Shown here one piece after another: positions 30,982-39,216 of a stretch of DNA of 39,477 nt. A program made the translations under genes and the position numbers. The notes beneath the pieces were generated by a model. That model searched no databases, was not told where the DNA came from, and was given only the letters and a program-made list of their open reading frames with translations. Position 1 is the first letter of the stretch; every line of letters begins with the position of its first letter. The stretch comes from Salpingoeca rosetta (taxonomy: Eukaryota; Protista; Choanoflagellata): NCBI GenBank assembly GCA_033442325.1, contig JAWQFM010000004.1, positions 1 through 39,477 on the forward strand. Reading direction: 5' to 3'.

Positions 30982-31379
30982 TCGCCATGTTGTGATGTGT
31001 CGTGTCAACTTGTGCACCAGTTGAACGAATGGCTGAATGTCTGTCGATTCCTCTGTCGCATTCCTCTTGTTGCTCTCTTCCCTTGTCTTCTTCTCTTCTC
31101 TTCTCTTCTGTTCTTCCCTTCCTTCACTCTCCCTCTCGCCTGCTTGCTTGCTTGCTTGCTTATGTCACGCCCTTCCTGTGCTTGCCTGTTCTTTTCATTG
31201 TATGGCGCTGTGTACGGCTGAACACGTTCTTGGTGTGTTTGGTGGATGTGTGCTGCTGCTGCTGCCGTGCGTGTTTGATTTTGGCTTGTGACTGCAGGGT
31301 GTTGTTTGATGTGCAGAGGGGTTGGTGTTGTTTGGTTGGCTTGGCTTCCTGTTGCGTATGGGCACTGCTGTGTGTGTGG

Positions 31380-31436
<57 letters not shown>

Positions 31437-31939
31437 GATGTGTTGGGCTGGGAGCGTTGTTTTGGATTGTGTGGCGGACCTGTTCTTTCCTCAGTAAATG
31501 GCTCGATGAAGATGATGAGACCCGCTTGACGGTGGTGATGGTGGAGCGGCGGTGATGTTTGTGGTGTTGATGTGGCTACAGACATTGGTGTGTTGTACCG
31601 ACCAGGCAAGGCCAAGCGAGGAGGGAGCGGCTGTTGTTCCTTTCGGCGACAAAGAGAGTCGGGTTGTTGCTGGCTGGAGGCACTTCATCCTGTTTGTTTG
31701 TTGTGTTCTCGAAGAGATTGTTGACGAACATCTTCCACGGAAGCGCTGCTGTGCGGATAACCTCTGTAAGGTTTTGCGAATCGTCCAGATGGCTGAGTCG
31801 CAAAACAACAACACACACACAACAAAGGAAAACAAAAAGCAGCGCGTTGAGTTGTCGTCGTCCATTTTGTCGTCGTCTTCTTCCAGCCACTCACGAACAC
31901 GTCACAACAAGCCACAAGGAGAAAAGACGACGCGCCGCC

Positions 31940-34900
31940 ATGTCCGAGAAGAGAGCGAGGAGGGAGGTGGAGGCGTTGCTGGCGCAAACGAAGCTGCCTG
32001 CAAAGAAGGAGAAACGGGTGAAGGACAAGATCAGAGCCATCGCCAACAACACGTGTGGGGAGATAGCAGAGTGAGTGCAAAAGCAACCAAAACGACGTGT
32101 TGGAACATGCATGCATGTGTTGGACACACGGACACTTCTTGTGGTTGTGCTTATTCTCCCCTCTCTCTCTGCTTGGCTTGTCCTTGTGTTGCAATGAGCT
32201 TGGTGTGGCTTGCTGTTGGGTGTTTACGTGTGCGCGTCCCCTCGCACCGCCTGGACACACTGTGTGTGTTTGTGGCAGGTTGGGACTGGCACCCTCATGT
32301 TTTTGCTCTCTTCATCCTCAGTCTTCTTGCTCATTGCATGACACACACCATTTGGAATGTTAGCTTGTATGATGCTGGCCTCGGCGTCATTGGGGCGCGT
32401 GCGGTGGCCGAGGCGCTCAAGGACAACACCTGCCTCAAACGACTCTAGTGCGTGGTGATGATGAATCTGCACCGTGTGACATGCATGGTTGATTGGGATG
32501 GCGGTGTTGCATGTTGCACCCCTTTTCTCCTCCCCTGTTTGCGCATGTTTGGCCGTGTGTTCACCTTCGCTCCCCGCGTTTCGTGTGTGCCTGCACAGCC
32601 TGGACAACAATTCCATCGGCGATGAGGGCGCTGTGGCGTTGGCGGAGATGCTGAAGCACAACACGACCCTCAAAGAACTCTTGTGAGTGTACACGCACAC
32701 ACACACACACACATGTGTGCTGCGTCACTGCCTGTTGCACCTTATCACGTGCACACGTGCCCATGTGTGGATTGGTGACTGTGTTGCCACCCACAACAAT
32801 CATCATCACGCACGCACGCACTCACTCTTCCTCACCCATGTGGCATCATCGCCCTGTGTGGCATCCACCATACCGTCTTGACAGCCTGTACAACAACTCC
32901 ATCGGCGATGAGGGCGCCGTGGCGTTGGCGGAGATGTTGAAGCACAACACGACCCTCAAAAGGCTCGAGTGAGTGTGTACACGCACACATGTACATGTAT
33001 GCTGCGTCACTGTCGTTGCACCTTATCACGTGCACATGTGTGGATTGATGACTGTGTTGACACCTACAACAATCATCATCACTCACTCACTCACTCTTTC
33101 TCATCCATGTGGCAACATCGCCCTGCGTGGCATCATACCGTCTTGGCAGCCTGGATGGCAATTCCATCGGTCCTGAGGGCGCTGTGGCGTTGGCGGAGAT
33201 GCTGAAGCACAACACGGCCCTCAAACAACTCCAGTGAGTGGAAGCTCCTCTTTGAAATGTGTGTCTTTAGGCGCTTCTTCTGCAATACCCATGTGCAGAT
33301 GGAGGCACTGCAAGCCACCCACGATGTCCCTGCGACTTGCTTGTTTGACCAACCAACAGATGCTTCCAGCCTTCACCTGTGCCACAAATGCTGCCACATC
33401 TTGTACAACTGGCATTGCCCCCTTTGCTTCCGCCATTGTGACTTCAATGTCGTAGGACCTGATGTGCGAGCGAGTACGCGTGCACGTGATCCATATGCAA
33501 CCCACTTTCATCCATGACACTGACAATTGCTGCTTGTCCACCCGTTCCCCCTGCTCTTCCAACATGCATTTCTTGCCACTTGCAGCTTGACCAAGAACTC
33601 CATCACCCCGGTTGGCGGTGCGGCGCTGGGTGCCGCACTGGACCAGAACCGCACCCTGTCTCGGCTTGAGTACGTCAATTGCGTTGCGCCTGCCTCATGA
33701 ACGCCTGTGTCCTGTTGTGGATTTGTGTGACCAATCGCCACTCTTTTGAGTGCACGCCACACTGTGTGTGTTCCTCTCTGCTTGCTTGCATTTCTCCACA
33801 ACCCTAACCACCAACCCTCCTGACCCACGCACCGCACTTGCTGCCTGTTCCCAACCACACGCTACCACCACGTGTCCTCGTTTAGGATCAACAAGAACTC
33901 CACCGCCACCGCCCGCGCCTTTGGTGCCGCGCTGCCCGTCGACCGAGAACTCTACACAGATTGGTCAGTCAACGCGTGCTTCCACTCTAGTCGCTTGCTC
34001 CCTGCCTTCTCTCTGAATTCTTCACCTCACACACACACACGCTGCGTGGTGCTTGCGCCCAATGTCGCGTGGGATCACAGGAGTGGCGATGATGAGGGCA
34101 AGGCCGCCTTTAACGAAGCACGCGAGGAGAAGAAGCGGCAGCATGAGCAACTGTTTGCCGCCTGCAGGGATGGCGACGCTTCCGTTGTCACCTCCCTCAT
34201 GGAGCAGGACAATGCAGACATCAACCAACAGGACAAGCGGGTATGTTCATCATGTGTGTGTTGTGCTTGTATGTGAACGGCGCTCGCTCATGGTTGCACC
34301 GGCCGTGTGTTCGTTTCCAACAGATCCTCACCACACGTGCCATGCCCCTTCCTGCCCCCCACCCAAACACAGGGCGACACACCGCTGCACGTTGCCTGCA
34401 GGCACAACCAGCCCGCCGTCGTGGAGCTGCTCCTGAAGAAGGGCGCAGACACTGCCGTCAAGAACATCAGGGTACGCGCGCATGTGCCGTGGGTGCGACG
34501 CCTTTATTGCACAACCGCGCCTCTTTTCAATGTGCACTGCTTCTGTGCTCGCTCACTCTGTCCGCATCCAACATCCACAGGGTGGAACACCATTCATGGT
34601 GGCGCAGAAACGCAATTTCCACGCCATCACCAGTATCCCAGGGCTCGACCCAGACAGCAAACCCCAGCAACAACCACAGCAACAACAGCAACAACCAAAG
34701 CAAGAGCAGCAGCAGGCGGACATGACAGCTTCAGACACACCAGATACAGAGCATGTACGTGCACAGGAAACCCATTGTCGTTTGCACTGCTGTACCACTT
34801 CAGACTTTTTTTCCTGTGAACCTCTTGCAACACACGCATCCGCCTTATCGTCTTGTGCGCCGCCATCATCCACCATCATACACCATCATCCATTCATTCC

Positions 34901-35865
34901 CCGCCAACGCCAATGCCCCCGCTGATGTACACAGGTGCACAGAGAGGCGGTGCAGGCGCGCATGATGGACATTGCGGAGCGCTCCGACACGCACATGGCG
35001 GGGCGAGCCAAGATGGGAGTATCTGGCCAGGGCCGCGCGGGCAAGACGACGCTTGTGAACTCGCTCAGGGGTAAGCCGTTCAACAAGCAGCAGCACTCCA
35101 CGCTCGGCGCCACCACCGATGACATGAGAGTCACCGTCCACACCATGGAAGTGTGCGACTGGAAGGTACGTTTAGTTGCGTGTATGTGCACGTGATTGTG
35201 TGTGTGTGTGTGTGATATGTGCATCCACCTTGTACCAACACTTTCCACCATCATTCGATCAATCACCACCTTATGTCATTGTTCACCAACACTCACAAAC
35301 ACCCACCCTTCCACATCTCGTGCAGGAGAGTGACCAGAGCACGTCCGAGTTCATCCGCAGTCTCGTTGGCACGGCGATGGCACGCGAGGCCGGCGTGGAC
35401 GAGGAGCTGAAGCGCGCGTCAGCAAAGGCACAGGCGCAGCACGCCACCCGTGTTAACCAGCACCAGCGCGAGAACGAGGACAAGGATGCCAAGAAGCAGC
35501 GCAAGAAGGGCCGTGACACATCCACAACTTCCACCCCCTCATCCGACAAGGCGTCCACCGCAGCCGTGCCTGCACCTGCTGCAGGTCGTGATGCCTCCAC
35601 AGCAACGCCTGCAGCAAAGGAGCAGCACCCAGCTTCCAGCCACGCCGACGTTGGTGACGACGATGCTGACGTCGTTGCCGTGACCACACCATCCGTTTCG
35701 AAGGAGGAGGTGGAGAAGGCAATCAAGGACATGGACTTTGATGCGACAATTCGCGAAGGCAAGATGCAGGTCTCCTTCAAGATCTTCGACCTGGGCGGCC
35801 AGTCCACCTTCTACGTCTTTCACCCTTTCTTCCTCACCAAGTGAGTCGCTGTGTGTATGCGTGCA

Positions 35866-35957
<92 letters not shown>

Positions 35958-37937
35958 TGTGTGTACGAGTGTGTGTGGTTATGTGTAAAAGAGGAAAGGA
36001 TAGTCAAAAAGAACAAAAAGGAGCCAAGAAAAGAAGGNNNNNNNNNNNNNNNNNNNNNNNNNNNNNNNNNNNNNNNNNNNNNNNNNNNNNNNNNNNNNNN
36101 NNNNNNNNNNNNNNNNNNNNNNNNNNNNNNNNNNNNNAGTGCTACCCCCCCCAAACCCTTACCCTTTCTCATCCCCACCCTTTTACTCCCAACATCCCCC
36201 CAACAGGTACGCGGTGTACCTGCTGGTGTTCTCGATGGAGGACCTGCTGCACCAAGACGAGAGCAAGCGGACAGAGGCGTGGGAGTTTATGGAGCACTGG
36301 TTGTCTTCTCTCCACCTCCACGCCAAGGGTGCACCCGTCCTCATCGTCGGCACCTTCGCTGATGTGGTCAGCAAGAGGAAGCAGCACGAACACATCTCGC
36401 GTGACATCCACAGCCGCCTGCGCCACAACCCAGCCTTCGCTTCTGTTGTGTACAACAGCAAGCACAAGCTGTGGTTCTGGCCCGTCGACAACACCAAGTC
36501 CATCGGCGACCCCATGATCCAGGGCCTGCGCCAGACCATCTCCTCCACAGCACTGGCGCAGGAGTACGTGAGCCAGGAGGTCGCTGTACCCTACCTCCAC
36601 CTCTACGACAAGCTCAACGCCATTGCCCGCGACGAGAAGCGGCCGCTGCTCACGTTTGACGAGGTGGTCCAGATTGCGCGCACCTGTGGGCTGCGCACAC
36701 GTGAGGAGACGAGGGCCTGCCTGCAGTTCCTGCACCTGTACTCCATGGTGCTGTACTACGACAGCGTGCCAGGCATGGAAGACTATGTGATCCTGAGCCC
36801 GCAGTGGGCGGTGGACACGATGACGCGCGTCATCCGCACGTTTGGCCTGCACGACGACGATGTGCAGGGGCCGGAGGTGCGGGCACTCGGCGCCGACGTG
36901 TGGGACGACCTTGTCGACCGCGGCATCCTGCACCGTCGTCTGCTGGAGGTGTTGTGGAGAGACGTGGACAGCGACTTGGTTGACCCGTTCCTGCGCCTCA
37001 TGATGCAATATGGGCTGTGCATTCAATACTCTCCACCCAAGCTGGTGGACAGCCGCAGAGCACTCGCCCGCGCCAACTCCGGCCACGGTGACAACGATGG
37101 TGTGAGCAAGGGCAATGACGCACACCAACGCCAGCAGCACCAGCAGCAGCAATACCTGGTCCCAGCCATTCTGCCAATGACGATTCGCCACAACAACAGC
37201 ACGATGGCATCCGTGTCGCTGAGCACGACGGCAGCACAGCAGGCCAACCCATATCTTGGACACGAGGAGAAGACGGCCTACGTCGCCTTCAGCCTGAAGC
37301 AATTCAAGCGAAGTGCGAGCGTGCGAGCTGAGCATGCACAGCACGCATCGTTCCTGCCAGAGGGGCTGTTCACAGTTGTGCTGGCGCATGTGATGGCGCA
37401 TGCACAGCACGGCGCATCACAGGAGCCGCAGCTGAGCCGCACCCACGCCATCTGCTTCATGGAGTCGACCAAGCTGGAGCTGCAGCTTGTGCCGGCTGTT
37501 GGCGGCATCAAGATGAAGATCACGAGCGCACAGCCACGCGCCATGCTGCACATGCTGCACACCATGATCAGCGAGGCCGCCAGAGAGCGCTATCCTGAGC
37601 TGAAGAGCAGCCTGTTGTTGCCGTACGACGACAAGACGCTGCTGTTCTTTGAGGATGTGCTGCACCACCACAAGAGCAAGCAGGACATGTGGGTGGACGA
37701 GCAGCTGCTGTCACCCGATGACCTGGTCGCCAAGTACGGCCCTCTTCTGCCCGTTCTCGGCCTGCAGGACAAGTACGACGTCTTCATCAGCTACAGGTGA
37801 GACGGTGTGCGTGTGTGTGTGTGTGTGTGTGCGTGCTTATGCGTGCGTGCGTGTGTGTGTACGTGCGTATGTGTACGTGTGTGTGTGTGTGTGTGTGTGT
37901 GTGCAAGTGTGTGTGTATGTGTGTGTGTGCGTGCGTG

Positions 37938-37969
<32 letters not shown>

Positions 37970-39216
37970 CAAGGATGTCTGTCACTTTCACCCAGTAGCC
38001 ACGACTAATGCATGCAGTTTACACTTTTCTCAACACTACCTTTTCAACCCCCCCCCCCCCAGGCAACGCGCCAACAGCGGGCTGGTGATGGCGCTGCATC
38101 CGCGCTTGGAGCAGCGCAACCTGGTGGCGTTCCTGGACGCCAACAACCTGGAGACGGGCCTCAACTTCAAGTTGTCGTTCATGACGGCGATTGGGCTGAG
38201 TCTGGTGGTGTGCCCCATCGCGTCTGCTGCCACCATCATGCAGATGAGGCAGCTGCAGCACAGCGACTACTGCGACAACGTGCTGCTGGAGTGGATGACG
38301 ATGCTGGCGCTGCACGAGTTCCAGCGGGCGCACGAGGAAGATGAGGAGCAGCAACATGCCAAGATCCGCCTTCGCCGTGTCGTGCCCGTGATTGTTGGCA
38401 GCGCGTGGCACAATGTGAACGATAGCAGCAGCATGAGCAGGGCCGAGGTGAGCGAGTACGACTCGTTTGACCGCCTGAAGCGGCTGGCGATGACGTTGCC
38501 TGATGTTGTAAGCAAGGAGACAGCCGTAGCGCTGGACCAGTATTTCACGCAGGTGCTACACTTGCCACCGCCACAGCAGCACAAGAGTGTACGTGAGACT
38601 GTGTTGTCACTGTTTGACATTGACGCGGTGGTTGCTTTGAATGCTGTTGTGGACCGCACGTCACAGCTGCGCGACATTGCAGAGAAGGTGCGCCAGGTTG
38701 CCGTCTCTGCCAGAAGCGACGAACAAACAACGCAGGAAGCAGGCACAGCACGTCGATCCACGCAGGTATGGTATTTTGTGTGTGTGTGTGTATGTGTATG
38801 TGTGTGTGTGTGCGCGCGTCCATGCCTGCAGGCGCATCCCTGGCAGCTTGGCGTTCACACTCTGTTTCACCCACCCCTTTCACCCACATATCCAGCAGTC
38901 CTCCTTGTCGCTCTCGTCCACCACCGCGACAACTCCTGCTCCACCGCCACCCGCCACCCCATCTTCCTCCTCGTCCTCCTCATTGCCATTTGAGCCAGAT
39001 CTCGTTCAATGGCTCAACCGCCACTCGCTGCTGCCGCACGTCGAGTCCGCCCTGGTGGAGCACGGCATCGACTGCCTGGAGGTGCTAGTCGTGTCTGTTC
39101 ATGAGGATTTGCTCACGATGCAAATGTTGAAAGGTGCGGGTGTGAGAGTGGGCCACGCAGTCAAGCTGGTGCGAGAGGCAATGAAGTGTTATGTGGACGC
39201 AAGCTCAGCGTATTAG
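31940..39216 (+). CDS. ROCO-family protein LRR(6)-ankyrin-Roc GTPase-COR-TIR-SAM, ~1473 aa. Exons 31940-32070, 32364-32447, 32599-32682, 32885-32968, 33150-33233, 33586-33669, 33886-33963, 34081-34240, 34373-34471, 34581-34754, 34935-35165, 35326-35840, 36207-37796, 38063-38765, 38896-39216
   Basis: All 14 introns are GT-AG and phases agree, giving 4422 nt of open frame from ATG to TAG (assuming no exon is hidden in gap 36038-36137). Ribonuclease-inhibitor-type LRRs ([23 protein letters not shown]); ankyrin GDTPLHVAC; P-loop GQGRAGKT; [16 protein letters not shown]; VLIVGTFAD; COR motifs [20 protein letters not shown] and YLVPAIL; [12 protein letters not shown]...AFLD...DNVLLEW; SAM DLVQWL...[10 protein letters not shown]...[10 protein letters not shown]. 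Confidence 0.92.
32599..33233 (+). repeat. Tandem duplication of LRR exon plus intron cassettes (three near-identical 84-nt exons, two homologous introns; period 286 and 265 bp)
   Basis: Introns 32683-32884 and 32969-33149 align end to end, sharing gctgcgtcactg, gttgcaccttatcacgtgcaca, catgtgtggattg, caacaatcatcatcac and cataccgtcttg(a/g)cag. Confidence 0.95.

Follow-up and report, generated by a model that had tools for sequence, protein, structure and literature searches.

Exon-length leucine-rich repeat cassettes with hypervariable strand codons in a candidate ROCO receptor family of Salpingoeca rosetta

Background

In the LRR-ROCO genes of the brown algae Ectocarpus and Saccharina, each leucine-rich repeat (LRR) is encoded by one exon of fixed length, the introns are in phase 2, and the number of repeats varies (Zambounis et al. 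2012, PMC3341825; Teng et al. 2024, PMC11378527). These exons have been duplicated and shuffled, with positive selection on residues of the concave face (PMC3341825, PMC11378527). The LRR genes of the ciliate Tetrahymena also contain tandem LRR exons of equal length (90 nt); over 96% of their introns are in phase 2, and two exons together encode a "junction amino acid". These genes have spread by ectopic recombination and are enriched in subtelomeric and pericentromeric regions (2019, PMC6564038). Here, we examine an LRR-exon array in PTSG_13152, a gene from the choanoflagellate Salpingoeca rosetta that lies on the forward strand at positions 31940-39216 of a 39,477-nucleotide stretch of contig JAWQFM010000004.1 (assembly GCA_033442325.1), referred to below as the window. 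An initial annotation of the window had cited a precedent for LRR-exon shuffling in Ectocarpus ROCO genes, which we located in the literature (PMC3341825).

No living group is more closely related to animals than the choanoflagellates, and their means of recognizing microbes or viruses are poorly known. The variable lymphocyte receptors (VLRs) of lampreys present hypervariable concave-face residues on a conserved LRR scaffold; their germline gene is incomplete and is completed somatically with flanking cassettes. Our reading of the S. rosetta locus, which we hold with considerable confidence, is that the array is the sensing LRR domain of one member of a multigene family of candidate intracellular ROCO receptors, in which a unit of exon plus intron has been duplicated and exchanged and the strand codons are under diversifying selection.

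Results

The spliced model of PTSG_13152 comprises 15 exons and an open frame of 1473 amino acids, 100% identical to the public PTSG_13152 protein over its full length. Pfam searches of the exon translations returned LRR_6, Ank, Roc, COR-A, TIR_2 and SAM_2, in the domain order LRR, ANK, Roc-COR, TIR, SAM, a set that marks the predicted protein as a ROCO protein. Exon 1 (31940-32070), a 100% match to PTSG_13152, contains the start codon, the N-terminal helices, and the first half-strand, and ends in phase 2. Next come five consecutive phase 2-2 exons of exactly 84 nt, as had been claimed, each with an AG acceptor and a GT donor. Cassette A (32364-32447) is of a divergent first type. Cassette B (32599-32682) has the family core and was recovered by the exon model, by the cassette scan described below, and by Pfam LRR_6, while cassettes C (32885-32968) and D (33150-33233) were found by the exon model and the scan. 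Cassette E (33586-33669) is of a conserved type that is penultimate in paralogs, and its splice junction to the next exon (33669>33886) was observed in RNA. A sixth, capping LRR exon (33886-33963) is 78 nt long and also phase 2-2. The one-LRR-per-exon layout of the Ectocarpus ROCO genes, with constant exon length and symmetric phase, is therefore present here in five exons.

Re-splicing the array gave the same strands as the initial annotation (KRL-Y-LDNN, KEL-F-LYNN, KRL-D-LDGN, KQL-H-LTKN, and SRL-E-INKN), and the exon ends quoted for cassettes B-D were exact (5' GAC AAC / TAC AAC / GAT GGC; 3' GAA CTC TT / AGG CTC GA / CAA CTC CA). These three middle exons are nearly identical centrally and divergent at their ends, differing from each other at 2-6 of 63 core positions versus 6-9 of 21 end positions. 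Together with their introns, they form a tandem repeat of 265-286 bp (Tandem Repeats Finder score 870).

Each 84-nt cassette encodes one 28-residue LRR of the ribonuclease inhibitor (RI)/NLRC3 type. The repeats follow the RI-like pattern of a beta-alpha horseshoe (28-29 residues, LxxLxLxxNxIgdeGaxxLaxxL), as seen in the 28-residue period, the LRR_6 matches, the comparison with solved structures, and a structural model. Among solved structures, the LRR region matched ribonuclease inhibitor (1dfj, E=4.8e-32) and NOD2 (5irm, E=2e-32), as well as LRRC34 and NLRP3, and its best database relatives outside choanoflagellates were RNI-like proteins and animal NLRC3. An AlphaFold (AF2) model of residues 1-215 (predicted local distance difference test score 81, predicted template modelling score 0.79) shows strands and helices alternating with a period of 28, e.g., R70-L-Y-L-D74. 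With the repeat numbered L1 x2 x3 L4 x5 L6 x7 x8 N9, it is the x5 codon, at the centre of each beta-strand, that the intron interrupts, and in the model the residue encoded at the junction sits mid-strand in every repeat. The upstream exon contributes x2, x3, and two bases of x5, and the downstream exon contributes the last base of x5, x7, and x8. The proposal that each binding strand is assembled from two exons holds in the sense that two exons encode each strand, but the upstream exon alone decides the junction residue: 48 of 50 cassettes begin with the base C, so that joining any pair of cassettes leaves this residue as it was.

Close S. rosetta paralogs were gathered by searching with the Roc-COR exon, which gave 1585 homologues at E<=0.001, and the LRR region of a paralog, used as a further query, retrieved more. 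Ten paralogous loci (L001-L010) on scaffolds of GCA_000188695.1 together with the window made up a sample of 11 loci, in which we scanned for an AG, 84 nt open in phase 2 with the LRR pattern, and a GT or GC. The paralogous cassettes implied by the initial annotation were found, with 66 exact 84-nt cassettes across the 11 loci. Cassettes of the family type number 3 to 9 per gene and are spaced at 253-301 bp in the regular arrays.

An entropy profile was calculated from the 50 unique family cassettes. Amino-acid entropy was at most 1.1 bits at 19 of 27 codons, making the core nearly invariant, while it reached 3.5 bits at exon codon 2 (x7), 3.1 bits at codon 3 (x8), and 3.3 bits at codon 26 (x3). 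The exon-terminal dinucleotides that contribute to x5 occurred in 12 different forms, and x2 and x10 were moderately variable. The same five positions were variable in all 11 loci.

Two comparisons were made of how far these codons have diverged. The first used 27 units from six genes, compared in all 351 pairs without filtering by identity: the p-distance was 0.095 in introns and 0.108 at fourfold sites of core codons. It was 0.048 at positions 1+2 of core codons, and 0.661 at positions 1+2 of the four most variable codons (x3, x5, x7, and x8). In 16 independent nearest-neighbour pairs of units, picked by intron similarity, introns differed by 4.4%, core synonymous sites (pS) by 12.5%, core nonsynonymous sites (pN) by 2.4%, and nonsynonymous sites of the variable codons by 42% (variable-codon pN versus core synonymous sites, Fisher p=7e-12). 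The intron figure is biased low because the pairs were picked by intron similarity; the synonymous-site figure and the unfiltered comparison are free of this bias. The elevated nonsynonymous change at the x positions that had been predicted was therefore seen in both comparisons, far above the neutral proxies. Diversifying selection on the concave face is the simplest account of the variable codons, and it is well supported by these counts; the positive selection described for concave-face residues of Ectocarpus ROCO genes is matched here by counting methods, as distinct from a codon site model.

The introns between cassettes (~ 190 nt) are homologous across genes, and most of the 52 introns have 35-38 BLAST partners at 80-100% identity. 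An earlier, permissive global alignment was dropped, given that unrelated introns scored ~ 80% identity with it, and it was replaced by BLAST and stricter alignments. The two introns between the window's family-type cassettes are ~ 91% identical to each other, whereas each has a closer relative in another gene: the B-C intron (32683-32884), with ~ 35 homologous cassette introns in other genes, is nearest to one in L007 (97.0%), and the C-D intron (32969-33149) to one in L004 (97.8%). Intron divergence averaged 0.095 within genes versus 0.099 between genes, so the cassettes do not cluster by gene; clustering by gene would have told against the initial annotation. Together with the paralogous cassettes and the excess at the x positions, this means that the evolutionary half of that annotation survives three of its four refuting conditions. 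Multi-unit duplications within genes were also observed: in L007 and L008, introns lying at a distance of three units are 97-100% identical, and so are introns two to five units from each other in L010 (L010_1542 versus 2118, 2402, and 2961).

Similarity among the genes differs between their two ends. A 5' module, extending upstream of the start codon by 900 bp or more and downstream through the LRR array, has 84-90% identity to the genes at L004, L005, and L007; the match starts ~ 700 bp upstream in L002 and ~ 350 bp upstream in L008. Its upstream part with the 5' untranslated region (31001-31939, forward strand) is 84-88% identical along its entire length to the corresponding regions of L004, L005, and L007, while the match to L002 and L008 is limited to the 3' part (from 31253 and 31583, respectively). 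In contrast, the 3' parts of the paralogs at L002, L004, and L005 are 70-87% identical, those of L007 and L008 are not alignable, and the L008 gene ends in a PARP domain. We also observed that window positions 31001-33240, holding promoter, exon 1, and LRR module, are 86-88% identical to L007 and L008 despite the unalignable remainder. The sensor module thus appears, from these alignments, to be common to different effector architectures.

Given the equal divergence within and between genes, the closest introns lying in other genes, and this contrast between 5' and 3' parts, cassette relationships as judged from the alignments do not follow gene relationships. As in the Ectocarpus ROCO genes, repeat number varies among paralogs and units are copied with their introns, and germline cassette duplication and exchange between paralogs is, at the level of sequence comparison, well supported. 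The concordance of nearest neighbours for upstream and downstream introns was decisive for 1 of 37 cassettes, many introns being about equally related, and is suggestive only.

Two of the paralogs contain arrays of a further kind. In L001 (PTSG_13066), whose public protein reads through introns, blocks of cassettes are 100% identical (3686/4967, 3958/5239/10082, and 4707/6440; span 3686-6523 and 10082), which represents either a very recent multi-cassette duplication or an artefact of assembly or annotation. At L010:1542-3838, a two-cassette unit (LKSSRIGP... / LDNNDIGS...) is repeated ~ 4 times, with two alternating intron types that are 97-99% identical between repeats.

Each of the ten paralogs is located 17-73 kb from the end of a scaffold in GCA_000188695.1 and is oriented away from that end. 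This shared placement and orientation suggests a conserved subtelomeric block. The S. rosetta genome paper describes subtelomeric repeated regions common to most telomeric supercontigs, without mention of these ROCO genes by name (PMC4054682). In the window itself, no TTAGGG telomere repeats were found, and no orphan cassettes were found elsewhere in its 39 kb.

The initial annotation had also proposed that cassettes may be recombined by alternative splicing. Symmetric 84-nt exons could be skipped, repeated, or alternatively chosen in RNA, so that one gene yields many receptor isoforms, an arrangement reported in Ectocarpus ROCO genes and in Dscam. Because the cassette exons share one length and are all phase 2-2, any skip would stay in frame; alternative LRR-exon isoforms have been reported in brown-algal ROCO genes (PMC11378527). 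Three stranded RNA-seq runs were examined, whose short reads cross-map among paralogs. Junctions 33669>33886, 34240>34373, and 34471>34581 were observed and the exons were covered, yet none of the 15 joints listed was a GT..AG joint skipping a whole cassette, leaving the splicing half of the earlier reading unsupported. Joints that seemed to skip 719-914 or to go back 626-628, considered as possible exon skipping, back-splicing, or circular RNA, were rejected as paralog cross-mapping, since the tabulated reads, which cover most of these joints, show substituted letters that match the exon ends in length. One of these reads matches the last cassette of the L002 gene joined to an E-type exon, and another resembles the L007 gene. 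The public PTSG_13152 model, built with RNA-seq, also has all the cassettes. We consider isoform combinatorics an unlikely account of the locus; rare isoforms may still occur, given that short reads cross-map and that 43 further joints lie beyond the 15 listed.

Many reads matched the cassette core alone and carried other letters of equal length at the exon ends, encoding strands such as LKALSLRW and LKTLFLW. Such reads, with differing strand codons on a shared core, indicate that several paralogs are expressed. No RNA read has the window's base at 33655 or at 34381, although at the latter position it is present in DNA contigs. Among the three runs, moreover, paralog-specific variants occur in differing shares.

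A simpler account would be that exons were recently duplicated in tandem and that constraint on surface residues was then relaxed, without adaptive diversification. Cassettes B-D and their introns do form a simple 265-286 bp tandem repeat, and surface residues of LRRs generally tolerate change. Relaxed constraint, however, predicts nonsynonymous divergence no greater than neutral, and the variable codons reach 0.66 against 0.10 in introns and fourfold sites, or 42% against 4.4-12.5% in the independent nearest pairs. These codons directly adjoin introns that are 3 to 10 times less diverged, an excess too sharp for relaxed constraint to explain, and the recurrence of the same five positions at every locus is likewise unexpected under it. 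We judge this account improbable, and less likely still than isoform combinatorics. Least probable of all is a targeted mutational or templated process acting in place of point mutation and selection, such as short-patch conversion from a cassette reservoir: exon-end changes are multi-base and clustered, strand motifs such as TWL|G and SEN recur across several genes at differing array positions, and a cassette's upstream and downstream introns usually have their nearest relatives in different genes, but conversion tracts would need to stop repeatedly within a few bases of both exon-intron borders, no separate reservoir was seen in the loci read, and the nearest-neighbour test was decisive for one cassette only.

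Downstream of the LRR array, on the same strand, the remaining exons encode the putative switch and effector domains. Three ankyrin-repeat exons (34081-34240, 34373-34471, and 34581-34754) are supported by Pfam Ank (E=3.9e-10) and by RNA splice joints. The second of them is exactly one 33-residue ankyrin repeat (99 nt, phase 0), so the layout of one repeat per exon reaches past the LRRs. A glutamine-rich, low-complexity linker (34640-34715) marks the boundary between ANK and Roc, and many cross-mapping RNA reads stop there.

The Roc GTPase domain of ROCO proteins, with the P-loop GQGRAGKT, is encoded by exons 34935-35165 and 35326-35840. With the domain divided between exons, each of the two fragments alone fell under the Pfam Roc cut-off (E=1.4e-5 and 0.012); the precomputed annotation of the PTSG_13152 protein includes PF08477. 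A large exon (36207-37796) contains the end of Roc followed directly by COR, as in other ROCO proteins, with COR-A at E=4.6e-19 (69 bits versus a cut-off of 35) and a weak COR-B. The TIR-domain exon (38063-38765), which starts ...YDVFISYR|Q, matched TIR_2 at E=0.011, under the cut-off on the fragment, and PF13676 is carried by paralogs in precomputed Pfam. The last exon (38896-39216) holds a SAM-like domain (SAM_2, E=0.0013, just under the cut-off) and the stop codon. Except for SAM_2, the Pfam families of PTSG_13152 are also precomputed on paralogs. No exon had a Pfam match to NACHT, the nucleotide-binding module being Roc-COR, and a Pfam scan of ten long open reading frames upstream in the window gave no match. 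We also observed a 100-N assembly gap (36039-36138) inside the intron preceding the COR exon, and long TG microsatellites upstream of the gene (31369-31435) and in two introns (35850-35977 and 37810-37970).

Discussion

We propose that the unit of evolution in this family would be the 84-nt phase-2 exon with its ~ 190-nt intron. Units would be gained and lost by unequal recombination, and exchanged or homogenized between paralogs, which would keep introns and the helix-encoding core ~ 90% identical across genes. The strand codons x2, x3, x5, x7, and x8, straddling the intron, would meanwhile be pushed almost to saturation by diversifying selection, with the diversity arising in the germline over evolutionary time. 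Ligands may bind at the variable face and switch Roc-COR, which would then activate the TIR-SAM end, and the family may serve immunity or non-self recognition.

Several points count against this proposal. The family sample is 11 loci rather than the whole genome. Pairwise counts take no account of recombination and do not amount to a phylogenetic site model, and saturation is close at the variable sites. Part of the excess at exon ends could come from very short conversion tracts with diverged donors. The PTSG_13152 copy may be weakly expressed or silent in the RNA runs used here, and ligand binding, GTPase switching, and an immune role are putative functions.

The RNA reads that differ at 33655 and 34381, and the variant shares that vary between runs, hint at a further reading, which we offer as a doubtful one: the scaffold-end ROCO paralogs might be expressed in a variegated or switchable manner, with PTSG_13152 a currently silent member and cassette donor. 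This would resemble the subtelomeric contingency gene families of parasites and yeasts, and the LRR surfaces on display would then differ within a clonal choanoflagellate population.

On our favoured reading of duplicated, exchanged, and diversified units, the family has the population-genetic hallmarks of fast-evolving immune receptors: the scaffold is conserved while the binding face is hypervariable, repeat number varies, and paralogs at scaffold ends exchange sequence. Its sensor would be coupled to TIR, SAM, or PARP effectors through a Roc-COR switch in place of NACHT. S. rosetta is amenable to laboratory culture and manipulation, and therefore ligand specificity and function are directly testable.

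Compared with lamprey VLRs, which share the contrast of conserved scaffold and hypervariable face, the germline gene PTSG_13152 is complete, with an open frame and canonical splice sites, and is not of the VLR type. SARM1 is alike in having TIR and SAM at the effector end (with weak Pfam scores on exon fragments here), but in S. rosetta TIR precedes SAM, and the sensor is LRR-ANK-Roc-COR and not ARM repeats. The Tetrahymena genes share arrays of equal-length phase-2 LRR exons and a junction residue common to two exons; they differ in their 90-nt unit, their LRR type, their mostly LRR-only architecture, and their ciliate lineage.

The brown-algal LRR-ROCO genes are alike in several respects: a ROCO protein with an N-terminal LRR array, one LRR per exon, phase 2, shuffling, and concave-face selection. 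Their exons, however, are 72 nt and encode a 24-residue LRR in a plain LRR-Roc-COR protein, while those of S. rosetta are 84 nt and encode the 28-residue RI/NLRC3 type. The S. rosetta family also adds ANK and a TIR-SAM end (PARP in a paralog), and its genes lie near scaffold ends. Alternative splicing, reported in brown algae, is not shown in S. rosetta. Searches of the literature on ROCO, TIR, and LRR cassettes in S. rosetta and choanoflagellates found no description of the 84-nt cassette design. Specifically, we found no description, in the literature searched, of such cassettes with Roc-COR and TIR, SAM, or PARP ends, of the contrast between an invariant core and a saturated strand, or of the location at scaffold ends.

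The closest LRR sequences outside choanoflagellates are the NLRC3/NOD-type LRRs of animals, with NOD2 and RI the closest solved structures by sequence. Animal NLR proteins have a NACHT ATPase where the S. rosetta protein has Roc-COR. No published description of 84-bp NLR exons was found in the literature searched, and the point was tested instead on the NLRC3 locus of the lizard Sceloporus undulatus, which has 13 consecutive 84-nt LRR exons with the same phase and register as in S. rosetta (each starts L-x-x-N-x-I-G). The lizard repeats differ along their whole length, whereas the S. rosetta cassettes have a near-invariant core and variation confined to the strand. Given this layout in the lizard and the algal and ciliate precedents, the exon design itself is not new, and is inherited or standard for the LRR type rather than a local invention. 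The comparison points to a cassette structure that either arose before animals or was reached by convergence. The match to animal NLRC3 in size, phase, and register suggests that the 84-nt LRR cassette may predate animals and may have been combined with different switch modules, NACHT in the animal receptors and Roc-COR in the choanoflagellate family.

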